A stretch of 64,000 nucleotides of DNA, from NCBI GenBank assembly GCA_051530055.1, contig CM121342.1:13717480-13781479 (forward strand). The letters run 5' to 3'. The stretch is from Neoechinorhynchus agilis. Taxonomy: Eukaryota; Animalia; Acanthocephala. A program made the position numbers and the translations under genes. The notes below the pieces were generated by a model. It saw only the letters and a list, made by a program, of their open reading frames with translations. It was not told where the DNA came from and did no database searches. Within the stretch, counting starts at the first letter, position 1. Each line of letters begins with the position of its first letter. Positions 6,945-52,577 of the stretch are shown here, one piece after another.

Positions 6945-7090
6945 CACACGGTATACTTATATGGTCCACGAAAGCGCACATAATCACTTAGTACGGTGAA
7001 CCATACGGTAATGAGTTCTGTACATCTCTACGGGTCCTCAAATACCTCCGTAGGAGGCAGGATTCATCAGTGAGTTTCCTACCTTCTGTT
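6945..7090 (+). repeat. Partial copy of the repeat core found in the 510-1008 palindrome arms and at 25623-25737
   Basis: Shared core GGTCCTCAAATACCTCC...GATTCATCAGTGAGTTTCCTACCTTC. Confidence 0.7.
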
Positions 7091-7953
7091 TTCCTTTGCA
7101 CTTCCTATTGTGTTGTCCTGGGGTTTGGGTATCCGAATAGCAGTAGATGTTTCCCTGCCAGCTTATTTTAGATCGTACGAATGAAGCCGCAAAATAGTTC
7201 AGTTTTTCTTGGCGAGGATTACAGATTGGATGAAGATTTCGATGAGGCTGTAATCTTTCATTTGAAGATTCCGCTAGCGCGCAAGTGCCCGTCAATTGTT
7301 GCAAATAATCAATTTGGCATTCACTCATGGTAGCGAGAATTCATAACTTTGTAATTTCAGATTCTCGTGACCTGGTGGACCGAGCTCGATTGGTAGCAGT
7401 CTCGACTTCCGCTCTTTGGACCATATGATACAGGACAGCAGTTAAGTGATCCACAGCGGTGGTATGGATGCTTATAAACTCTTTTTGTTTGGGGCGTTTC
7501 ACGAAACTGGCTGATCGATCTTTTGGGAGAAGGGTTGAACAATCCGAAATCTGTGATCACGCACTCAATTGTTCACAAACATTCGGATGTGGGGGCAAAA
7601 CAAACCTTCTCAGATCCAATCATCTGCCGCTCCCCTATATTTTGCTCTCGTTTGAGGGATTTGGAAGCCAACTATTCTTTGATATTGCAGCGATAATTTT
7701 ATCTGCAAATAACGCCTGCAAAACATCTTTTGGACAGAAAAACAAGTACAGTAGAAGAAAGTCACACGACGAAATTATAAAAGTGCCAGTTGGTATTAAA
7801 AGGACAATTTTTCAGAAACTATTTTACGTTATAAAAACAATTGTCCTAAGTTTTCGATGAACTTCGCCACCATTTGTCATCGTAACTAAGGAAACAACAT
7901 TTTTTGATGCATGTAAAATCCGTATTAATTTAGAATTCGAATCTGAAGTGTTG

Positions 7954-10344
7954 ATGCAACAGTTCAACGATCCGTACATACAAAGATTGGGGTTTTATTT
8001 GCTAAGACCGACCGTGCAAAATAATGATACGGATAGAATGATTCTGGAAAAAATAAGAGCTTCAGAAAAATATCATCATGGATCTTTGTTCAACGATGTG
8101 ACTTATCCGATTAAGAGGATAAGATTCGGCAAACTGAATGAACGAATAAATGTTAATTCGATCGTATGGAAGCGCCCAGGTGAAATATGCTCTATACCTA
8201 AGCTAATTAGCCATGCCGGAAAGGTTAGAATTGGAGATATTGATGATATTGGTGTTGTAGGCGTAATGAACGCTTGTAGAAAGCGGGGAGTGCAATTCTT
8301 GGAAAATAGAGTTTTAAATAAAAACTCGTTTGATAGAGAGTATTACGGTATGTTTGCTTTCAACCTTTATTTCAACGGATCCTGGCGAATATGCTTCATC
8401 GATGATAAACTGCCTTGGTTGAAGGACAGTCAACGTAAGAGCGGATATAGGCCGCTTGGGGTTCGCAGTGAATTTGAAAATGAGTTTTGGCCCGCTCTCT
8501 TGGAAAAAGCAATGTCCAAGTTACTGGGTGGATATTCGGAATTAAGTAAAATCACTATTTCAGAAGTCTTTTCACTTTTAGTCGGCGGTCATTCGATTGA
8601 AATTTTTGGTGCTATAGAAGACGCGATTTCCATTATTAAGGAAACAGAGGAATTAAGTTTGATTGGCATCACGGGAAACGAGCGTGATGATGCAGTCGTT
8701 TATGAATTTACAGATTATTGCGGATTAAAGTTCTGTGAAAGGATATATGCATGTAGCTGTTGGGAGATTAGCGGCAAAGCATCGGCTAAAGAAAGTTGGT
8801 TTGTTTCGTTTTTACGACTTTGGTTCTCGACTATAGGAGCAAAAAGCGACTCTTTGCAAATTCTTAAATATAATGCGATGGAGCAAAAGAATATATTTCT
8901 TTTGAGGGAATTACGAAAAGTCTTCAAAAAACTCATTTTGCTTTGCTGGACTCCAAATGCCACGCTCCGAATTATAACAAAGTCCTTGTGTGAACCGGTG
9001 AAATTTACTGAAGTCATGTTAAAGGGATCGTTTGACGGACTCTATAGGCCTATGGCGATTTTCTCTATTATAAAGCGTGGAATAACTTCACTTGATGATT
9101 CCAATAAGGTTAAGATAATAGTGTCACTTTCACAGCAGAGGAAGAGGTATTGTCTAAGATCGACCGAAAAGATGTACATTTCGCTAGGTCCGCGATTTAC
9201 ATGTACTAGCCTTGATTTCTACGATTTCGTTAGACTCGCAAGTTCAAAACTTTGTATAGAAAAATGAAAGGGCGATTTTATTATTGTTTGTCGTTTCGTG
9301 ACTTCTGTCACACTGCTTCATTCAGGGTAGTTGATATTACTAACACTTCAGCAATCGTATTTGAATGAAAGGCTTTCCTCCACCTCAGTTTTAAACTTAT
9401 AGAACTTCGCATTGAAGGGATTGAATTTAGGTCAACTTCAGCAATCGTATTTGAATGAAAGGCTTTTCACCTCAGTTTTAAACTTACGGAACTTCGCTTA
9501 AAAGGGATTGAATTTAGGTCGGCCCTTGAAATTCCGTGGTTTTTAAAAATCAGACGAGATATTTAACGCCAGGGTCCATCTAAGGTTGACTTTATATTAG
9601 ATATTAATTTAATGGCTCATCTGCATGTAAATCATTGGCATTGGTCTTCGATTGTTCCAAATCAATGTATCGCCATGTCGAAATTATCCACATCGCATTA
9701 TTTATTCGTTTATAAAGGACGACGCAGGCGTTGAATTAGTTCGTACGTTCAATTTAACACACGGGACTTATATGATAGAACCTTGGACGCAGGATTACAA
9801 ACATAGTAGAGATTTTTACCTTAGGGTTTTCCATGAGAGCAATGACGAATATGAAATTGTTTTTGGAATCGATAAAGGGACTGGAAATGTATTTTCGGAC
9901 ATAATGTTATCGGTGACACCTTATGCAGCGGGATTGCGGCGTTCAATTTTAGGAGAAGAAGGTGCTGATCGCATTAGGGAAATATTTTTGTCGCGCAGCA
10001 AGGATGTAATTGGACATAATGAACAGGATGTCAATTGGGGTTTATTCTGCACCACTGGACCAAAGCGTTCATTGGACGAACACTTTGGGCAAATAAGGTT
10101 TTACAGCTCACGGAAACGTGATGGAGAAAGCAAGAACGAAACGGTGAACCAAATGTGCGTGCAGCTACCAAGAGATGGTGACAGTGGGCATTCCTCGCAA
10201 TCGATATCTAGAAATATTGACGCTTTTCGAAGAGAATTGGAAATAATGGAGCGAACGGAAGCCCTTTCGAAACTATATGAATCACGTGTACTGAGAAGTT
10301 CGTTGTCGGCTCCAACACTAGATTATTGTTCTTCGCATTCCTAA
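7954..10344 (+). CDS. Calpain-like protein (CysPc + domain III), probably catalytically inactive; spliced, boundaries approximate
   Basis: Motifs WKRPGEI, GSWRICFIDDKLP and EFWPALLEKAMSKLLGGY in the long first ORF. The domain III end GTYMIEPWTQ...DFYLRVF lies in the 9652-10344 ORF. The intron junction near 9200-9650 and the start codon are unresolved. Confidence 0.75.
9345..9520. repeat. Tandem duplication, 2 x ~90 bp, in the calpain intron
   Basis: ACTTCAGCAATCGTATTTGAATGAAAGGC... starts at 9345 and at 9435. Confidence 0.9.
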
Positions 10345-11505
10345 TGAACGTTAGAGTTACACCGTTTTACAGTTACCTTCCGAATCACATAATTTGTATC
10401 TTAATATGTAAGTTTAAAAAGAATTAAGCAGCCCTTAAGTGCTGTGTCTTCTTTATCCAGCGAAATCGAAATAAAAGATCTGGGCAGTAATCTAGGCTTA
10501 CAATGGAGTGAAAAAATAAGCGTTTAATACATGAGTATCAACTTATCATTCACACCACTGTGACTTTTTCGAGCTCAATGGGCACTAAATGCGTTTTTTT
10601 TATAAAATGCAATATAAAACGACTAACTTCAGCTCTTAATTGAGTGGATGTAAATATTTTTTGTTAATCGCAAATAATTACTTAAACGGTCAATATAATT
10701 TTATAACATTTCTAATTTCTTCAAGGTGACATTTTGCTAGAAGGACGTTGCCACAATGTTCGTAAGGCGCTGAATTGCTTGAAAATTTTGAACAAAATCA
10801 AATACAGTGGTTTTTCACATTTTAGTTTCATTGGGACGAAAAGATGTTTCCAACAAGATTATTCCGGCAGCACATGGGTTCCTCTGAAAGCTGAATAAGC
10901 AAAAATCTTATGCAAGTCGTGTTATACGATTCCTGAATAATAATACTCTTACCCTACGGAACTTTCCCAGCATGTCCGCGTCGCTTACGTCTAGAAAGCA
11001 TAATTCCTCATTTGAAAAGGCCTTGCTGTCATGAAAGGCAATACATTTTTATAACGTTGAATATTTAAATCGCGCTTTCATTCAAGTTTAAAGTTCAAAA
11101 ATTCTACATTAAAAATGTCATATGGGAACTCAAGCAGGTGCACCTTTGGGATGCATCTAAACGACCACATCTTGAGTCAATATGAATAGTTCTAATTCCC
11201 AATACTGGAAGCTCAATCCATCGCAATTTTCGTTGGTATTACTGTGTCTAGGCGAAAAAATTATGCATGAGGGATATGCGCCGAACGCACTAATTCACAT
11301 TAAAAGCTACTGGAATTGTTCACGAGTATGGTCTAAAAATACTATCTAGCATTTTTAAGAACCACTTTGGAGAACAAAATGCAACACATGAGTGGTGTGA
11401 TATTACATATTTTAACCCGGGGCAATAAGCTCTTAAATGACATCGTTTAGGGAACTATAAATTGGGTTCCGGTAAGGAATCCGAACTTTCCAAAAGCGCT
11501 TCAAA

Positions 11506-23727: not shown

Positions 23728-24297
23728 ATGTATGTATGTATGCAACGGTACTTTCCTACGTTGCACCGTAGGTATAAGCCCGTCAGATAGAATTAGACTC
23801 CGCAAGGGATCTAAAATACACGACAGCAGTCCTGTTATGCGGGCAATTCCCGTCTCTAAAAATCAGGTCATCGTATGTACGACAGTTCCCTTTGCCTTTA
23901 CGATACAATGTCGTTGGCTTCCAGAAAAGAAACTGTTCACGACCTGTGGGCAAGATGCCTCGGACCGAATTATATTGCCCGTGAACTGCATTGTTGATCG
24001 CTTTATCTGACCATCTGACCTTGAACGCCGCACGTAAGAGAGATGAATGATTTTGGTCCAACTGCCTCGTCGCCGTTGGTGACAGTGTCCAGGTCTCTGC
24101 ATTGTAGTAGAGAATGCTCTCAATTAGAGTCCTGAACAGCTGCGAACGGAGTTCATCTGGCAAAGACTCACTGTCAAACAGTGGTTTAAGTTGCCCCATT
24201 GCTCTCCAAGCTATAGCTCTCCGTCGGCTGACATCCGCACTCATCTCAGGAACGACAGCTCCCAGATAGACATATCGCTCTATCTGTTTTAATTACT
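23728..24297 (-). mobile_element. Short 5'-truncated copy of the RTE-like element at 2094-3795
   Basis: Near-identical to 2114-2672 over ~560 bp. (TACA)n tail at 23728-23742. Confidence 0.9.
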
Positions 24298-25194
24298 CCC
24301 CGTCTCATTAAAATTGATTTATCGAAAGCGTTCGACTCCGTGGACCATTCATTCCTTCTCCGGGCCTGCTCCGATTTTTTTCTCAACCCCCATCAGAAAT
24401 TCTCACTCGAACGGACATACCAAAAAACAGAATATCTGCGCGTTAATGAGGAGGACCCAAATGTACATCGGTCTAATTTCTTAAACACGAAAATCAATAA
24501 AACGTGCTATAAATATTAGAAATTTATCCAAAAAGGCACTAATTCAATTTAGGATACGAAACAGCGTAGCTATTAAAACGCATTGTTGTTTAACGTCCCT
24601 CAACATTTTTTCCAAATATCTCAAAATATCTTTTAACTTACAAATAACTCGGAATGAACATTTTAGAACCGGAAACAAAAGTTATGCATCGCTCCATATA
24701 TTTCGATCTTTCGTGCATAAATTGGCATTTTAAAAATTCAAATTGAGATTTTTAAACAACATTGGAAGACAGCGAAGTGAAAATACATTTGCGACAGTCT
24801 GGATTTACTAAAACCATTCAATGTTCAATGAATGTACGATTGGAATATTTTCACAAAGAATTTCGAGCGAAGATCCCGAATTGTTTACTTTTTTGGCTGC
24901 AAGTTCGTTACTTTACTTAAAATTTTATGTCGGCAAAGAAGCCGATTATTTCCTCTCACGACTGGGAGGGATGCTAAAACATGCCACCGGCGATATGTGA
25001 TCCAGCAGCTTCCTGTTGCAGCGAATCAGCGCGGTGATCCAACGCGACAATGCCGCGGCCATCAAGGAAGCTGCCGAACAAACATAACATTTGAAGAAAA
25101 CGAAACTATGTTCATTCACAGAATTTATCACACACTAAAAAAAGCAACTTAGATGTTTTTTGATTTTAATCCTTAATTTAATGCTCACGTGTAA

Positions 25195-25266
25195 TCGGTG
25201 TTAGTATAGTGGTTAGTATCCCCGCCTGTCACGCGGGAGACCGGGGTTCGATTCCCCGACACCGAG
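25195..25266 (+). tRNA. tRNA-Asp(GTC): tRNA-Asp (GTC)
   Basis: Full cloverleaf: acceptor TCGGTGT/ACACCGA, anticodon arm CCCGC-CTGTCAC-GCGGG, T-loop TTCGATT, discriminator G. Confidence 0.95.
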
Positions 25267-25552
25267 CACACGACAGGGCGGTTACCGGGTCCCCTTCACC
25301 GAGCCCCACTAAGCGCAGCTCATTTCCACTTTTCGTTCAACAACTTGAATTTCATTACCCTGCAGCCTTACATGATTGAGCCAAATTTCAAAATTTTAAG
25401 AATCGCATTGTCAAATGCAGGAACCTGCATTCACATTACCCAGTATTAACACAGCTTGCGACTATGAATCGGGTTTACGATCGCAAATAACAAATCGAGA
25501 TAAAGTTTTTCATTAACTAAAGAATTTAATCAGAAACGCGAGTGCTGATCAT

Positions 25553-25800
25553 TTCCTTTAGACATGCATCCGACTAATATCTTGCATCAGGGAAGCGCAT
25601 GAAATAATTTAATACCCTGAACGATACGGTTATGAGTTTTTACATTCCTCCGGATAATCAGATACCTCACGAGGAGGCGGGACTCATCAGTGAGTTTCCT
25701 CCCTTCAACGGCATTTCGTCCCCTTTTGTTGTGATCAGGGTCTAAGTGATTCAATCACTTCCCTGATGCAAGATATTTGTTGGCTGAGTGCCTGAAGGAA
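25553..25800. mobile_element. ~250-bp MITE-like element with ~43-bp imperfect TIRs
   Basis: 25553-25595 is inverted relative to 25758-25800 (core AATATCTTGCATCAGGGAAG). The interior carries the GACTCATCAGTGAGTTTCCTCCCTTC core. Confidence 0.7.
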
Positions 25801-26030
25801 AAAGCCGAGTAAGGAATCTTCTAAACAATTGATTGATATAACCGGCTTGTCAATGGACATTAGAAAAAAGATTTCCATTAATTTTGAGTAAAATCATTTC
25901 CTAAAGTCAGCGGAACAAATGCGTCAACGACAATATAAAATTAAATCATGTCGCTCGCAAAATAACAAGGAGCATATATTCGTAAATTTATGATTCAATT
26001 TCTGAGCGTCATGAAGAAACGCCAGGTTTA

Positions 26031-26679
26031 ATAATAACACGTTTTATTTGTTAATGCACAAAGAATAAGACTCATGTACCTTTGGTTCCTCATGAACACT
26101 CGAGTTCTGTTAGGAAAAGATGAATGTGGTTATTATTTTTTCAGTAGATTGATAGTTCGTGGTTATTGTTTGTAATAGAGTTTGTGAGGTTGGGCCTTTA
26201 ATCAGGTTCATTTCGGGTAATGACCTCCTAGAAGATTGGGTAGTGTGGAAACTAGAGTGCAAGTTGAGGCGGATGAAAGGAATTGAGATTAGAGAATCAA
26301 ACCCAGTTCTAAAAAATCTACAGGCGAAACCAATATATTTCATTTGTTAAATGTTTGAAATAAAATTTAAATTGCGTACAGTATAACACTTGCAGTTAAG
26401 AATTTATGAAAAGTTCATTCACATCAGTGATATTGGTATTATCTTTGCTAAATGTTTAATATGATCAATTGGTAGAACTTCTTACGAAAAATTGGTTGAA
26501 GAAAAGTAGAACATTCGCTAAAGAGATTTTGCATATTAATTGCACATGAAAAATGAGTGTCCGCTTTCACACCGGATCCGTCATGCACTCCGGATCCATC
26601 ATCCACTCCAAAACCATCAAATGAGGACCCAAAGGTACATGGGTCCTCTTTGTGAATCACAAATAAAACGTGTTATTAT
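26031..26679. mobile_element. ~650-bp non-autonomous DNA element with ~60-bp TIRs
   Basis: ATAATAACACGTTTTATTTG...CATGTACCTTTGGTTCCTCAT (26031-26093) is inverted relative to 26621-26679. Confidence 0.75.
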
Positions 26680-27197
26680 AAGTAGCTAAATTGAAAGAAA
26701 TGTATCGAAGACGTTGAAAATCATTTAGACGTAAAATATATGATATTTAAACTTTAGTTGTCATTCAAAAAGATTAGATTAGTGCAAATGTTGTTAGTGG
26801 GTTTACGATGGATCGTAAACCTGAACGTGTCATGAACATAACAAACACAGAAAATCTGTTCAACTGGCAAAAAATGAGTAAAACAATATATATCGGCAAT
26901 TGTAGGAAACAGGGAGCACACGTTAAAAGTTCAGCACTAGGATTTGTATATAATCAATACTAGTGTATAATATAGACGATTGCACTGAGATTACAACCCT
27001 TTTTTCTGACCGAGAAGGAAAATTTTTGCACTTACTTTGCATTAAATTCTAAAATAGAATATATTTAAACGTATAACGTTCAATTCTTGGGATCATAGTA
27101 CTAATAAAAGAAAATATGATCTATTCATTGATCAATAAGAGTGCTAAATGTAACGCGTCGATTTATTAAGCGGATACTAAACACAATGCCGTAGATA

Positions 27198-27869
27198 TCA
27201 CGGTTGAGAATTCGCAGGTAGATTTGATTTCAGTTCTCCTGCGGGAAGTAAAAATCGAAGAGATTCATTTGTCCAATAGGTCGTGTGAATTGCGAACTCT
27301 ATAAAATCCCGTATTATTCGAGACGAGCGATCATTCACGACTCGAGAATTTATATGTGGCGCTGAAGCTGGGTTGAAATTCGTGTTCACCAGCTCACTAT
27401 CATCCATTGTTTTTGTATCTTCTTTCTTAGGTCTTTTGATCGTACTTTTCGATTTATTTGTGTTTGTTCGCTTTCTAACACTTTTTTTATCGACTTCAAA
27501 TGCTGATTTAACTTGCTCCGGTGCCATCTTTATGAGAGCCGCATACGATGGACATCCAAGTTTCGGACGTCCCCTAGTCCTTCGCTCCGAGCACCTGCCT
27601 TCTACTTCCAATTCCACAGAACGGATCAAACTTTCCATTATGTCAACTGCATGTTTTGCGGCATTCGATTCGACATTAATGATTGGTCTACCCATTTTCT
27701 TCGTTTTCTTGTGCTCAACATCTCTGTTCTGGCACTGTATATTCTTGGTGTCGTCTGCTAGCGGAATCACTGGTGCCATCGGAACGGGAATAGCAGTATC
27801 TTCATTTTTCTCGACTATTTGCTCAACTTTAACGGAATGTGCGATTTTATTAGTCGGTAACTTCTCCAT
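27198..27869 (-). CDS. Orphan Lys/Arg-rich protein with GRP (AT-hook-like) motifs, paralog A, 223 aa
   Basis: Intact ORF with AATAAA 30 nt after the stop, and a conserved paralog on the other palindrome arm. Confidence 0.7.
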   Translation of the reverse strand: MEKLPTNKIAHSVKVEQIVEKNEDTAIPVPMAPVIPLADDTKNIQCQNRDVEHKKTKKMGRPIINVESNAAKHAVDIMESLIRSVELEVEGRCSERRTRGRPKLGCPSYAALIKMAPEQVKSAFEVDKKSVRKRTNTNKSKSTIKRPKKEDTKTMDDSELVNTNFNPASAPHINSRVVNDRSSRIIRDFIEFAIHTTYWTNESLRFLLPAGELKSNLPANSQP

Positions 27870-29881
27870 TCCTGCTATTATTTGTCCTAAATGAGAAATT
27901 AAAGAATTATAAATTTCGAATCAAGCAAAAAGTTAAATCTAGTTTCACAGCGCACTACGATTCGTTGCTTCTTGTACCGCCAAACCTTAGCTTTTCCTTA
28001 GCGAATAAAAATCGCCTTTAAGAAAAAGGCAGCATTTCCAAAATAATAATTACACGTATTATGAATGCTGCAAATCACTAATAATTTCAGGCGAACGACC
28101 AAAAATTGTATCTCCAACTTCAAAAATGAAGATCTAACGAAAACATACGAGGTATTGTGAGCTAGTGAGGAAATTGGCTTGATCATATTGTGAAGTTCAA
28201 GCCTCGTTTATACTCAAGGTGTGAATGAAAAACATTGATGTCACGAAATCAGCTCTTTGTGAAAAATCGAATTCGTTTACTTGTTTTCTCCCTCTATTAG
28301 ATTTAAATTCTTCATTCCAAGAGTACAATTTTTTAAACCTCGAGTTATAATCACGAATTATAATCACAAGCGATAGCGTGTTATTTATTGCCATTCATAT
28401 CTTACTTTAAATTCAAGCTTAGGAAGTAGCCACGGGCAATGTTAAGTCCTCTTTTATACTCACGATATCTATGCGGGACATAAATGTCACGAAAAATCAG
28501 TTTCCAAAAAATCCGTTTTATTTCCTTGCTTTCAACATTCTTTGCAGGCCTTTAGCTCACTTTAGCGATATTTGAACAGAATCTCTCATGTGCTCATTCT
28601 AAACTAAAGCTAAATTTTTGAAAATGTGTTAAGGCAATAAATCAGGATTTTGAAATCTTTTAAGACGCGACAAGTATTGAAATTGCAGCCGATTTAAGGA
28701 AATAAAGTACCCAACTTCGTTCAAATATTTAAGCAAGCAAAAATATAACTTGTGTGCTCCAAGTGGAAGGATATAATTTCAATGGTTTTTGTCAAAGCTC
28801 GCGTTTTAAATGTAGTACAAAGAGTTCGATAGTATAAAAGGAAGTACAACAATGTAATATATTTTCCGTCGAATTTAAAGTAAGGTATGAATGATAATAA
28901 ATAGCACGTTATCGCTTGTGATTATAACTCGAGGTTTAAAAAATTGTACTCTTGGAATGAAGAATTTAAATCTAATAGAGGGAGAAAACAAGTAAACGAA
29001 TTCGATTTTTCACAAAGAGCTGATTTCGTGACATCAATGTTTTTCATTCACACCTTGAGTATAAACGAGGCTTGAACTTCACAATATGATCAAGCCAATT
29101 TCCTCACTAGCTCACAATACCTCGTATGTTTTCGTTAGATCTTCATTTTTGAAGTTGGAGATACAATTTTTGGTCGTTCGCCTGAAATTATTAGTGATTT
29201 GCAGCATTCATAATACGTGTAATTATTATTTTGGAAATGCTGCCTTTTTCTTAAAGGCGATTTTTATTCGCTAAGGAAAAGCTAAGGTTTGGCGGTACAA
29301 GAAGCAACGAATCGTAGTGCGCTGTGAAACTAGATTTAACTTTTTGCTCGATTCGAAATTTATAATTCTTTAATTTCTCATTTAGGACAAATAATAGCAG
29401 GAATGGAGAAGTTACCGACTAATAAAATCGCACATTCCGTTAAAGTTGAGCAAATAGTCGAGAAAAATGAAGATACTGCTATTCCCGTTCCGATGGCACC
29501 AGTGATTCCGCTAGCAGACGACACCAAGAATATACAGTGCCAGAACAGAGATGTTGAGCACAAGAAAACGAAGAAAATGGGTAGACCAATCATTAATGTC
29601 GAATCGAATGCCGCAAAACATGCAGTTGACATAATGGAAAGTTTGATCCGTTCTGTGGAATTGGAAGTAGAAGGCAGGTGCTCGGAGCGAAGGACTAGGG
29701 GACGTCCGAAACTTGGATGTCCATCGTATGCGGCTCTCATAAAGATGGCACCGGAGCAAGTAAAATCAGCATTTGAAGTCGATAAACAAAGTGTTAGAAA
29801 GCGAGCAAACACAAATAAACCGAAAAGTACGATCAAAAGACCCAAGAAAGAAGATACAAAAACAATGGATGGTCGCGAGCT
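27391..29881. repeat. Large inverted repeat: arms 27391-28414 and 28871-29881, 456-bp spacer
   Basis: Mirror coordinates sum to 57272 over most of the arms (27869/29403, 28186/29086). There are few substitutions and one 13-bp indel near the inner edge. Confidence 0.95.
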
Positions 29882-30053
29882 TGCGGTATCTTCAACACAT
29901 TCAGGCAGCGGCGATCATCGGTCACCTCCGGTTGGTCCAACATGGAAAGAGTGCACAATTGGCACAATACTTTGGACGAATAAATTACTTCAGCTTTTCG
30001 GCGAATTAATTGATATTCATTATTCGAATATGGAAAAAAATTCGCAGGGCTGA
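29403..30053 (+). CDS. Orphan Lys/Arg-rich protein with GRP (AT-hook-like) motifs, paralog B, 216 aa
   Basis: Intact ORF, identical to paralog A for the first 128 residues, with AATAAA 30 nt after the stop. Confidence 0.7.
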   Translation: MEKLPTNKIAHSVKVEQIVEKNEDTAIPVPMAPVIPLADDTKNIQCQNRDVEHKKTKKMGRPIINVESNAAKHAVDIMESLIRSVELEVEGRCSERRTRGRPKLGCPSYAALIKMAPEQVKSAFEVDKQSVRKRANTNKPKSTIKRPKKEDTKTMDGRELAVSSTHSGSGDHRSPPVGPTWKECTIGTILWTNKLLQLFGELIDIHYSNMEKNSQG

Positions 30054-30191
30054 ATGTTCTGCTAGCTGATTGTCTGAACTGATAATAAATGTTCTTCGGA
30101 CGTTTTTTGAAGGCGTGCGCATTTTGAGCGGCTGTCGTCAACCGATTTCAGTGGCGCATGAGTGGATTCGAGCGCTTTTGGAAACTTCGTG

Positions 30192-30263
30192 CTCGGTGTC
30201 GGGGAATCGAACCCCGGTCTCCCGCGTGACAGGCGGGGATACTCACCACTATACTAACACCGA
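30192..30263 (-). tRNA. tRNA-Asp(GTC): tRNA-Asp (GTC), second copy
   Basis: The reverse complement matches 25195-25266 except for one D-loop base (GGTGAG vs GGTTAG). Confidence 0.95.
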
Positions 30264-30479: not shown

Positions 30480-32725
30480 TAAAGTCTGCTGGCGAGGAGG
30501 CATGCGCGCTGAGTTCGAGCTTGTGATCACCAATACTCTCTTTCGACTAAAGAACTGTGACAAGACGACCGGGAAACATCCAAGATCGGGACATTGGCAT
30601 CTCATCGACTACGCCATAACCCGACAAAACATGGATCGGATTTCCTTGTCACAGTCTCTGCGCGGAGCCGACGATTGTTGGACCGATCATCGCCCGGTTT
30701 ACTCCTCTTTGCGTTTACTCCTTAAAACGAAGCGACCAAGGCATTCGAACCCTAGAAAAAGTAGATTCAAGATAAATGCTCTCAAAAAAGATGAGATCTC
30801 AAGATCATACTCGTCAAGGGTCGAAGAATTACTACAGCAATTGCCACATACATCGGATGATACAACAACCTCCTGGCAGAATATCAAATCAGCCATTATA
30901 ACTGCTGCCAACGACGTACTGGGGATTTCGTATGCATAAACATCAAGACTGGTTCGATGGGAACGATGACGTGATATCCGAGCTCATAAATCAGAAGCAA
31001 TTTTTCCTAGCTGTACGAGCAATCTATGGACCGAGAAACAATTCCTTTGCGGTGATCCAAACTTTTGACAATCAAACTACCTTGACGGATGAGGCAGACA
31101 TTCTAGCGAGATGGACGGAGCACTTTGATTCACCCCTCAATGAGCCCACAGATATAGCGCCAGAATTTCTTGATTGCATCCCCCAGCATCCGGTCCAATT
31201 ATGGATGAATGATCCACCTGATCTAAAGGAACTCGAAGATGCCGTTAAGATGGCTAAAATGGTAAATCGCCAGGCCTCGATAACATTCAGGCTGAGCTGA
31301 TAAAATGTGGAGGAACAGTCCTCCTACACCGCCTTCATTCTTTACTTCAGTCAATATGGGAAAGTGGAATCGTACCTCAAGCCTTTCGCAATGCTTTGAT
31401 CGTCCCGATATTCAAAAAAGGTGATCGCTGTTAATGCGGGAACTAAAGAGGAATCTCGCTCCTATCTGTCGTTGGGAAAATATTTACTTAAGTACTCGCT
31501 CGAAGACTTCAGAACTTCAGCGAACAAATTCTCCCTGAATCTCAATACGAATTCCGACTAGGCCAAGGAACTTCTTAGATGATTCTGTGAGCACGCCAAT
31601 TATTCGAAAAAGCAAGAGAACAACAAATACCTATGATGATGACGTTCTTCGACCTGAGAAAGGCTTTCGATTCGGTGCGAAACTTTTATGGAATACAAAT
31701 CAGATACAAATGTGATGGCGATCTTTTTAATCTTCGGCGACTAAAATCGATTTCGGAGACTGCGTCCACAAATGCGTCGGAGCTGCAATACGCTGACGAT
31801 AATGGAACTCCAGCAACTACCTTAGAAGCTCTTCAAACGAACGCAGACGCTTTCACTTACGCATATAATCTTGGCGGTTTATCAATCAATGTTGATAGAA
31901 CTAAATACATGGTTCAGGCAACTGCTTCCAGTTACGATCCTAACACATAACTTCGTATTTGTAATCAAACAGTGGAAAGAGTTCAAAGATTTTGATACTT
32001 TGGAAGCATTATCACCGAGAACAGCGATCTGACTTCTGACATCCAAAACAGAATTCGAGCCTCTCATCTTGCTTACGGTCGCCTAAACAAGCGAGTGTTC
32101 AAACAACGGAACCTAAAAATCTCGACCAAACTAAATGTGTATTCAGCTGATGTTCTCACCACCCTTCTCTACGGCTGCAAAAGCTGGACTCTTTACAGAA
32201 AAATTATAAACGAGCTGGAACGTTTCCATCAACAAAAGCTGAGGAACATTCTTGGGGTGAGATAGCAAGAGAGAACATCAAATCTGCAGATTCTGGAGAA
32301 AACACAAATGACGAACATCGAAGGCCTCATAATGAAACATCAACTGCGATTTCTTGGACATCGTAGTCGCCGGTCCATCTCCAGCCTTCCGAAGCAGATT
32401 CTCTTCGGTTAAATCGAAAATGGCCGTCGTCGAAGAGGTGCTCCCAAAAAGCGTTTAAAGGACCAACTGAAAAAATTTCTAACCCTAGCCGATCTTAGTA
32501 TCGAAACATGGAACGGTGTGGCTAAAGACCGTGTAAAATGGAGAGAAGATCATTTCAGGAGTAAAGACATTCGACCGAAAACGGGCAGCAAACATCGAGG
32601 AAAAGAAAAAAAGAAAAATTATCGCGAACTCATTGCCTAAACCTTCACCGGATATTCCTTGCGCCCATTGCGATCGTAAATTCCGAAGTCATCTCGAACT
32701 TTACTCGCACAACAAACATTGACAT
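30480..32725 (+). mobile_element. Degenerate RTE (BovB-like) LINE
   Basis: KHPRSGHWHLIDY, WTDHR, HQDWFD, FDLRKAFDSV, LQYADD, LLYGCKSW, QLRFLGH, RRRRGAPKKR and a terminal C2H2 CAHCDRKFRSHLELYSH. Many stops and frameshifts. Ends approximate. Confidence 0.85.
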
Positions 32726-32923: not shown

Positions 32924-33479
32924 GCACATGAATGTAGATTCAGGGTATAGAATCTACACATATCGGAATATTGATCTTTCATCAGTAGTAACCTTATAGT
33001 ACAGGATCTATTAAAAACTCAGTTATTCTAATTTGATATGACAAACTAAGGGGGTGAAATTATTGTGTTCAAATATAAAACTTCGATCAATAAATAAATC
33101 GATCTAGTCGATTTCATCTAAATCAAATAATAAGGAGTGTTTTAACTTTTGACATGAAATATATTAGACATCTCCCATAGGGCTTCGGCAGTTTTAAAAC
33201 AATTTTTAACTCCTTATAAAATCAAAACGGTAATGAATTTCGCACATGAATGTAGATTCAGGGTATAGAATCTACGCATATCGGAATATTGATCTTTCAT
33301 CAGTAGTAACCTTATAGTACAGGATCTATTAAAGATTCAGTTGTTCTAATTTGATATGACAAACTAAGGGGGTGAAATTATTGTGTTCAAATATAAAACT
33401 TCGATCAATAAATAAATCGATCTTGTCGATTTCATCTAAATCAAATAATAAGGAGTGTTTTAACTTTTGGCATGAAATA
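32924..33479. repeat. Direct repeat, 2 x 238 bp, separated by 80 bp
   Basis: Copies at 32924-33161 and 33242-33479 are near-identical. Confidence 0.9.
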
Positions 33480-37280: not shown

Positions 37281-37980
37281 ATGTGTTGCTGCAAATTGTC
37301 TAGACTGATTTCGTTGGTCTTAAATTTAACTCTGTTTATCAGTTCGATGGTTATGCTCACCGCGGCTTTCGCAATTATCTACAAGTCCGAGCCGGATCAA
37401 GCCGCGGAAGGAATAAAGGAAATTGGTATTGCATCAAGTCAACAACTCATAATCCCACTCTTGTTCGTTGGTGGATTATACGCTACAATTTCACTTATTG
37501 GGGTAATCGGTGTTATCGTCAACAGTGGATGTGTCCTGAGATTTCATTCAACAATACTCGTTGTGTTAATAGCATTTCAAAGTACAGGTATCATTGTCGG
37601 TCTTACACAACGAGACCGTCTAGCGCGGAGTTGTAGTGCTTACATTGAAGAGGTAAGTACCGTAATTCAACATTTCGTTTTTCTTATTCTTATATAAAAA
37701 ATAGATCGAAAAATCACTTATAAACCCTTTCAAAAAGAAAAACAATTGGACAAAGGCAATCGAGAGTTCATTTAATTGTTGTATTGGATCATTGGGTCTT
37801 AACATTTGCTTACCTCCAAAAGTTGAGAGCTGTAGAATAGTCGTTCCTCGATTCGTTCAAGAGCAAATGCCAGTGATGGTGATCGCTGGCGTTGTTTTGG
37901 TAGCCGCCGAGGCTATAATGATTTGCTTGTCTTTGAGAATCGCCAGGAAAAATAATTACAATAGAATTGCTGAACCTTAA
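37281..37980 (+). CDS. Tetraspanin, 2 exons
   Basis: Three N-terminal TM segments, then an intron (GTAAGT at ~37653 to AAATAG at ~37704), an EC2 loop FNCCIG...C...C, a fourth TM and a short tail. Confidence 0.8.
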
Positions 37981-38678
37981 AAAGTAAACTTTTGTTCGCG
38001 ATTATTCGGTATCTTGAAAAGCTCTGAATTTTGCGCGTATTTATGGCTAAAATTTTACTTGTAATATTTTCGCTTGATATCAGGAATAGTATCATTATAC
38101 CGATCCGTAATGTCATCTAAGCGCGAGTTTTAGATTGTACATGAAACCCACACATGTCGAAATTGGAGCTTCTTCTACCAGTTTATTGTAGTTATTCTAA
38201 ATGTTTTCTTCTCGTATTGATCGAAACTTGAAGCAAATGAGGGTGAAAATCTTAAGTAGTTCTCAAACAGCCCATCACTCTTCTCAAGTGGTCCTAGCAA
38301 TTTTTAAATCGGAACATAGCCAAGCTTGTGTTGTTGCTCTTTTCCATTGCGGTTTTGACTGCATATTCATGAAACCAAACTCAATCACGTTTCAATTGGA
38401 AAATTTATCTTAATTTCTAAGTACAACGATTTGTACGTTCACCATTATCACGTTCTCACATCACGGAATATGCTTGTCTGAGCAACAGATTGGTGGTTTA
38501 ATGACTTTTTTATGGAGATCCCTCCCTTCCACCTAGCAGTAATTTACGCAAATATCTCAGTGCAGATGGGCCATATGAGCATTCTGCTGGAAAGCGTAAT
38601 CACAACTGCTTTGAAAACCCATATCCTGTTCGCTACATCCACTTATATATTCCTTTTACTAAACTATTATTTGCAGCA

Positions 38679-40592
38679 ATGGATGCATCAACACAAACGG
38701 ATCCAGTTGTGCAGTCCAAATCAATACGAAGTCAGCTCAGTAAATGGCTAATGGTCGCCTGTGCCGTCACAACAGCTTCGTCTTCATTTCATCACGGATA
38801 TGGTATTGGTGTCCATAATCAATTATCCCCTTATATCGACCAAACATTTCATATTACACAAAATCGACTAAAAAATATATCCGGCGAATTCTTTAACGGT
38901 ATTCCTCAATTCGTTCTTACTCTCGGCAACCTTTGGGGAGCACTCACCGGAATGTGGTGGTATCGATTGTTTTGTTTCAATAGTCGCCGTAAATTGTTCT
39001 ACGCTAATCTAACGATTGGACTGATTAGTGTTCTAATCGTCTGGGTGTCGTTTTATACCGAAACATATAGTGTATATATCGTATCTCGGCTCCTTCATGG
39101 ATACCAAGGCGGAATGGCATGCTCTATTGTACCGCCCTATTTAGTTGAAATATCACCAAGACCGGTAAGAGGAGCAGTTGGAACTATCCATCAACTTTTG
39201 ATCACTGTTGGGATTCTCGCTTCTCAACTAATAGGAATCCCTCAGTTGTTCGGACGTACCAATTCGTGGCCTACGGCGTTTCTGTTGGGAGGTGTGACGA
39301 GCATTCTTGGATTGATTTTGACACGATTTCTACCTGACAGTCCCACAGAAGCAATCTATGAATTTAAAGATGAAGGGTTGGCTTTGATTAATTTGAAAAA
39401 ACTAAGAAAGGATGATCATGTCGCGAGTGAAATGAGTGCAATACATGTTGAGAATATATCAGCATCAAAGCCAAGGAAAATGTCAACTATTATGTTATTT
39501 CAATCCCGATTCCACAAGTGGCCCTTCTTCATTTCACTTACTTTGCTCGGAGGACAAGCATTATGTGGTATCAACGCTATATTCTATTATTCGGATTATA
39601 TATTTCGTACACCAGCGGCTTGGAAGGCGGCTGATTTGGGCTGATAAATCCATCAGGAAAATTGCAAGGTTTCGCGGTTCTTATTGAAGCCACTTAGAAA
39701 ATGAAAACTTAAGAGTTCAAAATTCTAGAAATGTTCAAGGCGATTAGACTCGAATCCTATTGATGCTGTAAATAATCAATCTGATTTTCGTGGGGAACAC
39801 CCACAAGAGCATTTATTTAGCGCATATTCAGATTGTCTCGATTATTGTCTGCCATAGATTAGAATGTATACAATTATCGATTTTACGTTTCTTTATAATT
39901 TTCCATCTATTTTACACTGGTTTTTGGCCTAGAATTGGGCCCAGTTAAATTTTACAGCGAGAACTGAATATCTAACCCCACTTCCTTTTGTGATACCTTG
40001 AAAATAACCTTCTCAGCCGTTGCATAAATCCGGTATCCGTGCTAGTAAGAGGCCGGCGTGCATATTTTTTACAGGTCTTACGAACCTGATATCTACCGTA
40101 ATCGCTATCGAACTCATGGAACTTCTCGGACGTCGAACACTGATTGTATATTCATGCGGTTGCATGACTATCATCTCTGGCCTGATGCCACTGCTAATTG
40201 CGCTTAATGCTTCTTTTCACATTCGCTACTTGGCGTGGATCACAGTATCCCTCATAATGGCGTACGTTGCCTGTTTTGCAATCGGAATGGGCCCGATTCC
40301 TTACATCTATGCCAGCGAAGTGTTCAGACATGATATTCGCAACAAAGCCCTGGTTTCAGGACTTCTATTGAACTACAGCTTCAATCTCATTGTTTCTCTT
40401 GTTTTTCCTCTTCTCAACAACCTGATGGGAGGTTATGTTTTTCTCGTATTTATGGTTATAATGGCAGCGCAGACGACGCTTTATTTTTTCAAAATGGCTG
40501 AGACCAAAAATAAATCCATTGAAGAAATCGAAGAATTTTGGACAAAAGGAAAGACCGATAACGATATCAGGGAAGAGGAGGACGTACAGTGA
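38679..40592 (+). CDS. GLUT/SLC2A-family facilitated sugar transporter, split by a ~410-bp insertion
   Basis: SFHHGYGIGVHN, SRLLHG, PPYLVEISP..VRG, HQLLITVGIL, PDSP, GINAIFYYS, ELLGRRTL, GMGPIPY..ASEVF, AETKNKSIEEI. Confidence 0.9.
39606..40022. mobile_element. Insertion in the GLUT coding sequence with imperfect 15-bp TIRs
   Basis: CAGCGGCTTGGAAGG (39613-39627) vs CCTTCTCAGCCGTTG (40008-40022), 12/15 complementary. It separates the codons for ..DYIF and HKSGI.. Confidence 0.55.
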
Positions 40593-48905: not shown

Positions 48906-51900
48906 TTAGCTGAAAAAGTATCTAGAGTTCAGAACGGCGTTGAGATCAAACGCGTTGGAACCTACTGCTTGCTTTGGATAATTTCTGATAAGGTTATCAA
49001 CAACATAAAATACGCGATTTGTCGAGGCATCGTTTCGCTCGATTCTGTTTGAGTTGTAAATAGTCCTTAAAAATTGATGACTCAGATCATCGAGAATGTT
49101 TTGAGAGTGCAATTTCACAAATTGTTTTCTGCAGATCTCATTGAGCACTTTAACGTCTGCTGCGTGAGTCCAATAGCTATCATGAACCGACACAAACGTT
49201 ATTCCAGCCCGATGACACTCGATTGCCGTCATCATCATGTGAGTAGAATCAAGAGAATGAACAAAATTGGGTGGCATAGCACTAGCTTGTTTCCTCGGAT
49301 CACTTTCAATTATGTTTCCAGAACTTTTTTTATTCTACGAATTCGTTTGTCAAGCACGGCGAATTCGTGGATTAGTGTAGGGCTGAACAACCGTAAATCC
49401 AAGAGGAGTTATCCATTCTGTCAACCTCCCTCCTATCTGACTAGTTACCCTTGCACACAAACTTAGCCAATCTTGAATGAGCTTTGCACTGGAAAACATT
49501 TCTCCCAAAACCACAAAGGTTTTATCAGCCACGTAATCAGTTGCATCACTCAAATACTCGGACGGAAATCCGGATTCGAGTAATCGTCTACTGATTTGGC
49601 GGTGCGCTCCATATAGAGTAACCCCATAAACAGCCGTCATTACAGTTTGCTTTACTAATTTCCTAGACACAAAGCCATTTAATCGTCGAGCAATGTCAAT
49701 ACCCGCTTGATCAGCATCTACTTTTCTATGCTTTTCCAAAAACTCGGCTACTCGAGAATACACATCTTGAGGATGATCACTTGGAAGAAGATTCACAGCA
49801 GCTGCTCCTTCCAGGTCGCGACCCATCGCGGCATAATGTTGAAGAACGTTACAAGATCCATCTTGATGAACAGGGAAGTGAGACATAAACGACTCTGGAT
49901 TCCGAGATTCAATTGCACGCGATATTTCCATACAACATGCTAATGTTTGCCAGGGATTTTCGGATCGCTGCCACCATCCGCGACCGTCAAGGGGATGTTT
50001 AGCAGAATCCAATATTTCTCCAATCATCTCATCAGCGAAAACCTCGCGCTCATCCAATGAACAATGTTTTTTGAGTTCTGTCAAATTTACCAAATGAATT
50101 TTTAACCAACGAAGACCGTTTTTTCCGAGTGGTTTTGGTTCGGCGAATTTGATCAGAGCTCTACTCACATCACATCCGAGGTGATTGAAATGCGGAGGAG
50201 TCGCATAAACACGCCCTCGAAAATCCATGTTATGAGCGAAAAAAAACGGTTGATAATGGTGTAGGAAATGCTTTGCTACTGACAATCTATAAAATTCATT
50301 ACACCATAGACTATAACTCTCCGCTCGGATTTTTCTGATTTCTTCTCTTGACCTCAGGACGCGTCGTTTTTCATTGAGGGATAAATCTTTTCGTATCGGA
50401 GGTAATGGTGGAAGGTGGTCGTTCTTCGAAGGGATTTTAAGATTTGCCGGTCCTCCATGCTGAAACACATGTAAGGCGATGTCTAAAATGTGTTCATTGA
50501 TATTCCATGGAACACTGCTCACTATATTAAGCGCTTCTAAAACTCGGTCATCGCATTTGTTATCTTTATTGAAATCGAACTGCGATCTTACCATTGATAT
50601 CTGATATATAAGAAGCCCACCGCGATTTGGGGCAGTCCACGGCACTGGTCTACATGTCATTGGGAGTTGTGAGCAATGCATACGAAGTGATTGATTACGT
50701 TGATCGCTCTTGGAAATTACTTTATTTCAGGAATAAGGATTTCAAAGTTGACTATCCAAGCCCCTGAACTAGGATGGACTTTTATCTGCGTCTCGGTGAA
50801 TTCACCAGGAATTCGATTAATTCGATAAAGTACAGGTACATTTTTTACACTCTCACCGCTATTCATATCGACTTTCAAAGATTTTATCATCAAGTCAAGA
50901 AGCTGAAGTCCCAATTTAACCTTAAGAGAATATGGGAAGCAAAATTCGCTTATTGCGAGATTTGTATTGTTTACTAAACAAGCATTCTGCCATTTTTGAT
51001 AAAAGGACGAGTTTTGAGACAAACTTGATTCATAGGTCCGGAAAACGTTCTCCAAATCCTTTATATAGTTTACAGACTTTTGCTTAAACAAAAGCATATG
51101 TTTGCACTCAAGTTGATCACCCAACTCAACCGCAAGTTGCCGCATTGGAAGAGAATAGTAGGGAGATTGGTTCAGGAGGTTCATATTGAGAAGATTCATC
51201 ATCAGATCCACGTATTCGATCGGTGAAAATGTCTCGAAGAACGGTAGTAGGGGCAGTTGTTCCGATCTCAGAGATTTCTCTTCAGCTTTTCGAATTTGCT
51301 TCATCAACAAAAATCCTGCTAGGAGCTGTGAGCGAAAGGCGCCCTCAAACTCACTTCCATTAGATGTGGTACCTTCACTCGTTTGAAATAATGGATCGAT
51401 ATCTTCGAATCCACGGATTTCAAGATCAAGTTGACGCTTACATTGACGATTTTTGTCTGCCTTTTTAAGTATTACAATCAAATATCCTAAGTAGAGGCTC
51501 ACGATTTTTTTAAATAAAGAAATTCGACTAAGCACTTTCATGGTAAATTCAATAGATTGTGCAAATCTTTGCGATCCAAAAGGTTTGCATCACAAAATAG
51601 CAAATGCGCTGACTAATTTAGAATTTAATATGAACCAAATATTTTCTATTTCCGAAATCGATAATAAGAAGCGAAATATAGACTAAGTTCATTAGTTCCG
51701 CCACCCCAGTGTCGATTTTCCGGTGCGAAAAATTTGGCGGAACAAAAACCAATCACATAAATTGTTTTGTGGATTGGCTATGAAATGAATCGTCGTCGAC
51801 TGGTTCGTTTGATCCATTAGTAAGATAGATGCTATTATCATCTGAGCCAACGACCATGAACATGTTTCTGATCCCGTGTATTTGTTCAACGGTCAATATA

Positions 51901-52577
51901 TTTGTAAGAGAATAAATATCCTTTTGGAGATTAAATCCTTTTGATTTTAGTTCGGCCAGCAGTAGTTTCATCATTCCTGACAAATCGCCCGTATTCTTCG
52001 CAGCGGCCATGCATCTAGACAACGAACATAAGGCCGCTGCGTACGAAACCCGATCGGGATCGATATTTTGCTTTTTCATAAATCGAAACAAGGAGACGAT
52101 TCTGTGGAGATTTTCCTGTCCATCACATGGATCATTTGAATAAAACAGCAGGAGCTCATTAAGCGCATTTAATGCGCCTTGATCGATTGCGAATCTTCTC
52201 AAATGTCGATTGGCTTGTCGAGCTTTTGATTTGAGAAGGCAAACCTGAACAAGTGTTTTGAGTTCATCACCCATCGATTTTTTTTCAGGAATCACTGATA
52301 CATCACCAATCGTATGTCGCCTGAACGCTAATATCTCTCGCTTGTTTAAGGTTCGAAGAAGATCTGTGGAGTTTTCGCCCAGTATTTTTTTCCGCGAATT
52401 ATCAGTTTTTCTACCGGTCCGTATCTTTTTTAGACTTTCCACCAAATCAACGTAATCAAAATCAATCGAGTCAAATGTTGGGACACTCTCAGGACGGGTG
52501 CAAATACATCGACAAGTTATCCTTCCTGAGAATTGAATTGAACATAAGTTACGAGCAAAACGAAATGGTGCTTTCAT
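48906..52577 (-). CDS. POLRMT: Mitochondrial (T7-like) DNA-directed RNA polymerase, with two in-frame stops in the specificity loop
   Basis: Targeting-like N-terminus, DFRGRVY, GLRWLKIHLVNL, HQDGSCNVLQHY, RKLVKQTVMTAVYG, PPNFVHSLDSTHM, FVSVHDSYWTHA and C-terminal YFFS*. TGA at 49350-52 and TAG at 49335-37 are in frame. Confidence 0.9.

Follow-up and report, generated by a model that had tools for sequence, protein, structure and literature searches.

Head-to-head paralogs with near-identical 5' regions and diverged 3' tails in the acanthocephalan Neoechinorhynchus agilis: a probable case of partial gene conversion

Introduction

SIGLEC11 and SIGLEC16 are head-to-head paralogs of primates, located approximately 9 kb apart, in which a 5' block of roughly 3 kb is kept near-identical by gene conversion while the tails of the two genes differ (PMC5701461). 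Described here is a smaller gene pair of comparable layout from Neoechinorhynchus agilis, an eoacanthocephalan fish parasite, in which the 5' parts of two divergently transcribed genes lie within near-identical inverted arms of about 1 kb and the 3' coding tails, located outside these arms, have diverged. The pair is found in a 64-kb stretch of DNA (64,000 nucleotides, referred to hereafter as the window) belonging to CM121342.1, a 16.4-Mb record of the acanthocephalan assembly GCA_051530055.1. All positions given below are window coordinates unless indicated otherwise, and record coordinates are obtained by adding 13,717,479.

Several features of SIGLEC11/16 are found again in the N. agilis pair. 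Specifically, the genes are arranged head-to-head with no intervening gene, the near-identical tract is confined to the 5' side, where it covers the N-terminal part of the protein (the binding part in the SIGLEC genes), and the 3' parts, which in the SIGLEC genes encode the effector tails, are homologous but diverged, with the boundary between the two falling within the gene. The systems differ in that SIGLEC11/16 encode vertebrate immune receptors whose conversion history is documented across species, whereas the N. agilis genes encode an unrelated type of protein and are seen in one genome.

A second parallel is provided by the hsp16 inverted repeat of Caenorhabditis elegans, on which Russnak and Candido reportedly worked in 1985. 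According to a published account that summarizes this work, the hsp16-1/hsp16-48 locus consists of 1.9-kb modules that are 100% identical and have 416 bp of unique sequence between them, and conversion was favored over recent duplication as the explanation (PMC3966223). The geometry is nearly equal to that of the N. agilis locus, with its 1.0-kb arms and 456-bp spacer; the hsp16 arms, however, contain whole gene pairs that are fully homogenized, whereas here the boundary cuts through the coding region and leaves mosaic paralogs.

Finally, the large palindromes of primate and mouse sex chromosomes are by definition larger than roughly 8-10 kb and can reach megabases, carry whole genes and show testis-biased expression (PMC8327919, PMC8600007, bioRxiv 10.1101/800185). 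An earlier note on this DNA, made from the letters alone, had likened the locus to Y-chromosome palindromes. The likeness holds for the mechanism, given that the same type of conversion is proposed and that >99% arm identity and a unique spacer are present here too, but it does not extend to scale: X and Y palindromes are 10 to 1000 times larger, the N. agilis arms (1.01-1.02 kb) falling well short of the 8-10 kb above which large palindromes are counted, and the N. agilis genes straddle the arm boundary. SIGLEC11/16 and hsp16 are the closer analogues.

The phenomenon is well known, and novelty is confined to the phylum in which it occurs and to an undescribed protein family; nothing in the locus challenges the current understanding of gene conversion. 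What it offers is a small, clean example of what would be partial concerted evolution, with tract limits that can be read to the base, in a very compact (46 Mb) and newly sequenced genome from a phylum for which almost no molecular-evolution data exist.

A Palindrome with Graded Edges

The features of the locus are collected in Table 1. A repeat search of the window identified two inverted arms of 973 nt with 99% identity (27391-28363 and 28909-29881), and a less similar extension of 66 nt (88% identity) continues each arm inward to 28414 and 28871, respectively. The difference in arm length is due to a short tandem duplication, 28355-28367, that the left arm carries. Between the arms lies a unique spacer, which is not a decayed palindrome in its own right: alignment of its left half with the reverse complement of its right half scores 22, a value matched by 7 of 100 shuffles.

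Table 1. Features of the N. agilis palindrome and its surroundings (window coordinates, except where another locus or chromosome is named).
Feature	Position	Strand	Description
Left arm	27391-28414		Promoter region, 5'UTR and codons 1 to ~160 of left gene; inverted repeat of 28871-29881
Right arm	28871-29881		13 bp shorter than left arm (pairwise alignment)
Spacer	28415-28870		456 bp, unique, 33.8% GC, AT-rich, not self-complementary
Left paralog ORF	27198-27869	-	223 aa; body of NCBI model ACOME3_007944 (P0001), hypothetical protein
Right paralog ORF	29403-30053	+	216 aa; single-exon gene model (P0002)
Left 3' coding tail	27198-27390	-	~64 codons + stop; DNA unalignable, protein homologous
Right 3' coding tail	29882-30053	+	~57 codons + stop; DNA unalignable, protein homologous
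AATAAA, left	27162-27167	-	Exactly 30 nt past TGA
AATAAA, right	30084-30089	+	Exactly 30 nt past TGA
Antisense ORF, left	27373-27894	+	173 aa; hydrophobic, Phe/Ser/Leu-rich; ends at or inside arm boundary
Antisense ORF, right	29378-29845	-	155 aa; hydrophobic, Phe/Ser/Leu-rich; ends at or inside arm boundary
TATAAA, left	28207-28212	-	338 bp upstream of ATG, ~200 bp inside arm; candidate core promoter
TATAAA, right	29060-29065	+	Mirror position in right arm; candidate core promoter
Candidate 5'UTR intron stretch, left	27887-28138	-	Split by BRAKER into introns 28138-27986 and 27977-27887, separated by an 8-nt micro-exon
Spacer relic	28448-28533		~90 nt, ~70% identical to TATA-bearing arm segment 28202-28288, E=6.5e-5
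tRNA-Asp(GTC), left	25195-25267	+	Directed towards palindrome; 1.9 kb from left stop codon
tRNA-Asp(GTC), right	30191-30263	-	Directed towards pair; 138 nt past right stop codon
MITE-like unit	25552-25801		250 bp, 52-nt inverted arms; related copies at 623-738, 795-908 and 6972-7086
MITE-like unit	26031-26679		649 bp, 63-nt terminal inverted repeats
P0003 (ACOME3_007902)	Locus 10001-10636		Same chromosome (CM121342.1), ~152 kb from palindrome; single-exon, single-copy; closest paralog
P0004, P0005 (ACOME3_001072, ACOME3_001409)			Another chromosome
Neighboring genes (group)	49350-52577; 7948-9267; 37281-39644	-; +; +	Gene tables, Pfam
ORF, open reading frame; UTR, untranslated region; aa, amino acids; MITE, miniature inverted-repeat transposable element.

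When the pairwise alignment of the arms is parsed base by base, substitutions are seen to be concentrated at the arm limits. Specifically, a core of 844 bp contains a single substitution (27923 / 29349), while 6 substitutions together with a 13-bp indel occur at the inner edge (49 aligned bases) and a further 8 at the outer edge (120 bases), such that 1/844 core positions differ as compared with 14/169 at the edges (Fisher p = 1e-10). These values bear out the description of the arms in the earlier note as near-identical over about 1 kb with mismatches gathered at both edges. Past approximately 27391 / 29881 the DNA alignment collapses, beginning with a 24-nt indel. Among the outer-edge differences (27396-27510 / 29762-29876) we observed that seven of eight have G or C in the right copy and A or T in the left; this could be a footprint of conversion bias, or it could reflect the direction of mutation.

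The same gradation is evident when coding and non-coding positions are considered separately. The non-coding sequence that extends for about 490 bp from each ATG to the inner edge zone holds one difference between the arms, codons 1-119 are identical between the paralogs, and the proportion of synonymous differences (pS) over codons 1-120 is 0.013. Codons 121-160 contain three synonymous and five non-synonymous changes (synonymous divergence, dS, 0.14; non-synonymous divergence, dN, 0.054), and the homogenized coding part reaches to about codon 157-160, close to the N-terminal stretch of some 155 codons that had previously been pointed out as alike. Together with the tails described below, three separated tiers of divergence (0.1%, 7-10% at both edges, and saturated) are thus found inside 1.5 kb.

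Near-identical inverted repeats call for consideration of an artefact of assembly, which could take the form of a chimeric long read that folds back on itself or of arms homogenized by the assembler or during polishing. The N. agilis genome (46.2 Mb) was Hi-C scaffolded and annotated by BRAKER with RNA-seq evidence, and the underlying MaSuRCA hybrid assembly combined Illumina super-reads with R9.4 Oxford Nanopore reads from a pool of approximately 50 worms, with very little HiFi sequence (PMC12690905). Such a hybrid of pooled material gives the artefact some plausibility, and 1 kb is a length at which the short-read consensus of near-identical repeats can go to the wrong copy. A fold-back, however, would be a flawless palindrome in which the spacer is minimal or missing and the flanks are duplicated or unrelated, whereas here there is a unique, non-palindromic 456-bp spacer, edges of graded divergence and a 13-bp indel, and homogenization of the consensus could inflate identity by about a percent at most and could not create arms. 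Furthermore, the arms are flanked by homologous but diverged tails, each with its own stop codon, poly(A) signal and tRNA gene, and no artefact makes these. An artefactual origin is accordingly regarded as very unlikely.

Homologous Coding Tails Diverged to Saturation

The two genes are transcribed away from each other, with 1.5 kb from ATG to ATG, and over their whole length the encoded proteins are 77% identical. Both ORFs are represented by gene models for which BRAKER drew on RNA-seq evidence. Since the sense frame is open through both diverged tails and the antisense ORFs are not, the outward-reading strand is the coding strand; the antisense ORFs, which overlap the homogenized coding part in both genes, are probably a by-product of Lys/Glu-rich sense codons.

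Outside the arms the DNA of the two genes can no longer be aligned, although the proteins still resemble each other, as had been claimed. Past residue 156 the tails align over the motif T..WTN..L..GEL..SN..NSQx-stop, finishing at the same place and with the same frame open throughout. The local BLOSUM62 score of this alignment is 45, compared with 20.8 +/- 3.9 for shuffled sequences (z=6.4), and was matched by only 2 shuffles in a series of 5000 and by none in a second series of 1000. The possibility that the tail similarity is due to chance, with one copy a recent chimera, is contradicted by these values. In a protein-guided codon alignment (52 aligned codons), identity is 56% at each of codon positions 1 and 2 and 37% at position 3, where 27% is expected from composition; the proportion of non-synonymous differences (pN) is 0.44 and pS is 0.73, indicating that synonymous sites are saturated. 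The comparison of synonymous and non-synonymous change proposed in the earlier note thus shows the tails evolving as coding sequence. Judged from these alignments, the tails are homologous and old, and are coding sequence under protein-level constraint. Each gene also has the AATAAA that had been placed exactly 30 nt past the TGA (Table 1); within the intervening 30-nt 3'UTRs only 8/30 positions match (27%).

The contrast between arms and tails bears directly on the age of the duplication. A young inverted duplication of the whole gene, whose tails diverged rapidly under positive or relaxed selection without any conversion, would be consistent with the mostly non-synonymous changes in codons 121-160 (five versus three) and with the tail being the least conserved part of the protein family. 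It is incompatible with the neutral sites: a tail pS of 0.73, 3'UTRs that are 27% identical and unalignable downstream DNA stand against some 500 bp of near-identical non-coding sequence upstream, and selection on the protein cannot yield a roughly 100-fold step in neutral divergence over some 30 bp. We consider this explanation effectively refuted. In this within-genome comparison the duplication is older than the identity of the arms implies, in agreement with the view that an old inverted duplication has had its promoter-proximal 1 kb homogenized, with neutral sites near-identical in the arms and saturated in the tails. A practical consequence is that both whole-gene identity (77% for the protein) and arm identity (99%) give a wrong age for the pair, a point of relevance to the annotation and dating of duplicates in this genome.

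Promoters and 5' Structure

The earlier note had also proposed that the locus yields two co-regulated isoforms from a shared 456-bp spacer. A promoter in the spacer is not supported by the sequence, as each arm has its own TATAAA approximately 340 bp upstream of the ATG, followed by a candidate 5'UTR intron. In the left gene the BRAKER model places the start of the first exon at 28146, 60 nt downstream of the TATAAA, and the intron acceptor, tttag/GACAAATA, lies 17 nt ahead of the ATG. The same layout is seen in the nearest paralog, P0003 (see below), in which a TATAAA is found about 230 bp upstream and an apparent GT..AG intron ends about 40 nt before the ATG. Most likely, then, the promoter is duplicated within each arm rather than common to both genes in the spacer. 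Similar regulation of the two genes would follow from the identical promoters that the arms carry, not from a bidirectional promoter in the spacer.

The exact exon structure upstream of the ATG is annotated differently in the two genes. The left model (27886-28146) gains 11 N-terminal residues from two 8-nt micro-exons, while the right arm (29126-29403), identical in sequence, has been given just one exon, which begins at the ATG at 29403, and no micro-exons. The stretch from 27887 to 28138 probably represents one or two 5'UTR introns, and the 8-nt exons have the look of a gene-finder device for keeping the frame open over them. The N-terminus MEKLPTN... can also be aligned with that of P0004, an unlinked paralog, which makes the ATG at 27869 / 29403 the likelier start.

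One further trace of the promoter region is found in the spacer. The relic listed in Table 1 carries its own GAGTATAAAAGAGG. It has the orientation of the left gene and is separated by 246 bp, in the upstream direction, from the left-arm copy; the right-hand part of the spacer holds no mirror counterpart.

Gene Conversion as the Probable Origin of the Pattern

Near-identical neutral sites adjoin saturated ones within about 150 bp, a juxtaposition that only recent non-reciprocal copying between old copies would explain. We therefore regard it as probable, with considerable confidence, that the locus consists of old head-to-head paralogs in which a tract of about 1.0 kb has undergone repeated arm-to-arm gene conversion, leaving the tails diverged.

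The proposed history would begin with an ancestral inverted duplication, after which intrachromosomal non-allelic gene conversion would have copied approximately 1.0 kb repeatedly between the arms. The converted tract would comprise the promoter with its TATA box, the 5'UTR together with one or more introns, and the first 157-160 or so codons, including both GRP motifs and the conserved core of the protein (described below). An earlier and slightly longer event may have fixed the present arm limits, the edges of which are now 7-10% diverged, and the latest event may have covered the 844-bp core with its one difference. Conversion presumably halts at indel-rich heterology, represented on the inner side by the 13-bp indel and on the outer side by the 24-bp indel after codon 160; this outer tract limit falls within a linker, basic and unconserved, that joins the conserved core to the C-terminal helix. 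With conversion halted at such heterology, the tails (60-67 codons), the 3'UTRs and the downstream DNA would have been left to diverge to saturation. The outcome would be two genes with the same promoter and the same DNA-binding-type N-terminal module, but with different C-terminal helices.

The number of events is the point at which the strongest alternative enters. The arms could stem from a one-off event, either a single recent conversion or templated break repair, or else a partial inverted re-duplication in which an older paralog had its 5' part overwritten, with the differences at the edges reflecting patchy mismatch repair or later mutation. A core with 1 difference in 844 bp is what would be expected shortly after a single event, and the two other family members whose loci were compared, P0003 and P0005, are singletons, so that palindromes of this type are not a general trait of the family. 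The three tiers (0.1%, 7-10%, saturated) nevertheless speak for more than one event, particularly as the intermediate level is present at both edges, over about 50 bp on the inside and about 120 bp on the outside. The simplest account of intermediate divergence at both edges is that two or more conversions, nested one within the other, ended at different points. The pattern thus suggests at least two conversion episodes, and a one-off event is considered unlikely.

Several points weigh against repeated conversion between old copies and should be borne in mind. The locus is represented by a single assembly that is a pooled consensus; exact identity of the arms could have been inflated by consensus building, and the edge differences could be polymorphisms within the pooled worms. 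The arms were compared within one genome, which limits how rigorously one event can be told from several. In addition, the identical 5' regions are annotated differently, with micro-exons on the left only, and the DNA between stop codon and tRNA gene has lost any residual similarity, so that membership of the flanking tRNA genes in the duplication is a symmetry argument only.

A Double-GRP Protein Family

To place the pair among known proteins, an exhaustive HMMER search with a two-sequence profile was run against 1.84 billion representative proteins. It returned only three further proteins, P0003 (E 5.8e-23), P0004 (2e-11) and P0005 (7.6e-6), all of which are hypothetical proteins of N. agilis. 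A word-indexed protein search found nothing beyond the two window proteins, and a version of the profile built from five sequences added none, P0005 contributing low-complexity words. The core conserved across the family corresponds to residues 42-155 of the pair and is composed, in order, of a basic-GRP motif, a helix of about 25 residues (A.KHA...M..L...VE.E.EG), a basic-RGRP motif and the sequence SY..L.KM.P.QVK..F. The GRP is invariant at both sites in all five members, and in the pair takes the form of KKMGRPIIN and RTRGRPKLG.

An AT-hook is composed of a G-R-P core with flanking basic residues, and the R-G-R-P of HMGA-type proteins binds the minor groove of DNA; the motif was reportedly defined by Aravind and Landsman in 1998. 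By this definition, the GRP cores with their basic flanks lead us to infer that the pair encodes small AT-hook-like proteins, presumably nuclear and predicted to bind AT-rich DNA. The likeness to AT-hook proteins lies in the two GRP cores that follow basic residues in the pair and in its three distant relatives. It ends with the GRP-helix-GRP-SY..L.KM.P.QVK..F arrangement, which does not correspond to any described domain and for which the searches gave matches in N. agilis alone. A Pfam search of both paralogs identified no family at E<=1, AT_hook included, a weak negative given that the Pfam model is very short. On the strength of these searches, the five proteins appear to form a previously undescribed double-GRP family that is apparently restricted to N. 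agilis.

Less can be said of the fold and of the tails. AlphaFold2, run on the two-sequence alignment, gave a mean predicted local distance difference test (pLDDT) score of 42.5 and a predicted template modeling (pTM) score of 0.17, too low for a structural search to be of use; the predicted C-terminal helix, residues 182-207, is likewise of low confidence (pLDDT about 52). No tail motif common to the family was found: the right tail and that of P0003 are marginally similar (36/1000 shuffles), and the other comparisons with the tails of P0003-P0005 are at chance. Given that the tails of the pair are alike but not significantly similar to those of P0003-P0005, the split between left and right genes is younger than the split from P0003. 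No inverted repeats were found near the P0003 and P0005 loci.

The family also bears on the possibility that the palindrome is not a gene pair at all, but a mobile element (a foldback or long-terminal-inverted-repeat transposon) or a hairpin-RNA locus producing endogenous small interfering RNAs. Long inverted arms with a short loop do resemble both foldback elements and hairpin-RNA genes, and MITE-like repeats as well as a possible retroelement fragment are found close by. Such an element would be expected neither to have the conserved ORF core that is shared with unlinked paralogs nor to have arms that end inside conserved ORFs continuing into homologous tails. Additionally, no further copy of either the arm or the protein was found in the 64-kb window, a protein search of the annotated proteome yielded only these two close copies, and no sub-repeats were detected within the arms. 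As the inferred transcription runs outward in each arm, no single transcript containing both arms is expected. An element or hairpin-RNA locus is, on this evidence, exceedingly improbable.

If arm-to-arm conversion between old paralogs is accepted, a further and speculative idea is that selection holds the conversion boundary in place, the two genes encoding paired chromatin-binding proteins with the same promoters and the same double AT-hook module but different partners for their tails. We view this as quite unlikely as matters stand. Were it true, the two proteins would have equal expression and equal DNA targets while their old, constrained C-terminal helices recruit different partners, providing a nuclear analogue of the activating and inhibitory paired receptors in a family that has seemingly arisen within the acanthocephalans. 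Less likely still is a variant in which transcription reads through both arms, and the resulting hairpin RNA of 1 kb has a regulatory role in the family.

tRNA-Asp Flanks and Extent of the Duplication

Outside the pair, the palindrome is flanked in mirror orientation by two tRNA-Asp(GTC) genes that differ by one base and are the sole tRNA genes in the window; no tRNA gene was found in 42 kb from two other N. agilis loci. Based on symmetry alone, the ancestral inverted duplication probably spanned one gene and one tRNA-Asp on each side. Comparison of left and right revealed no residual similarity above noise in either the stop-to-tRNA stretches or the DNA beyond the tRNAs. The left stretch is longer by 1.8 kb, and insertions of the MITE-like units account for at least half of this asymmetry. 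We also observed that no T-run immediately follows either tRNA-Asp.

Neighboring Genes and Other Observations

The genes surrounding the palindrome are ordinary, and include exons of a single-subunit (mitochondrial-type) RNA polymerase, a calpain-family protease, a tetraspanin and a sugar transporter of the major facilitator superfamily. ORFs of equal length at 50717-52577 were considered as candidate tandem paralogs and rejected, being unrelated exons of the mitochondrial-type RNA polymerase gene.

Past the right tRNA gene, an ORF of 145 aa (30502-30939, plus strand) contains the sequence '...HLIDY...DHRPV...' and has no Pfam match at E<=0.001; it may resemble the end of an endonuclease domain from a retrotransposon of the type lacking long terminal repeats. 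Elsewhere in the window, the segment 4001-6000 has a strongly negative GC skew (-0.48) and a raised GC content (0.48), with no tandem repeat at a Tandem Repeats Finder score >= 80. Lastly, two repeats unrelated in position to the arms were noted: a direct repeat of 238 nt (32924-33161 / 33242-33479; 97.5% identity, 318 bp apart) and a 299-nt segment at 24000-24298 that recurs 21.6 kb away at 2376-2674 with 96% identity. Both are probably dispersed repeats.

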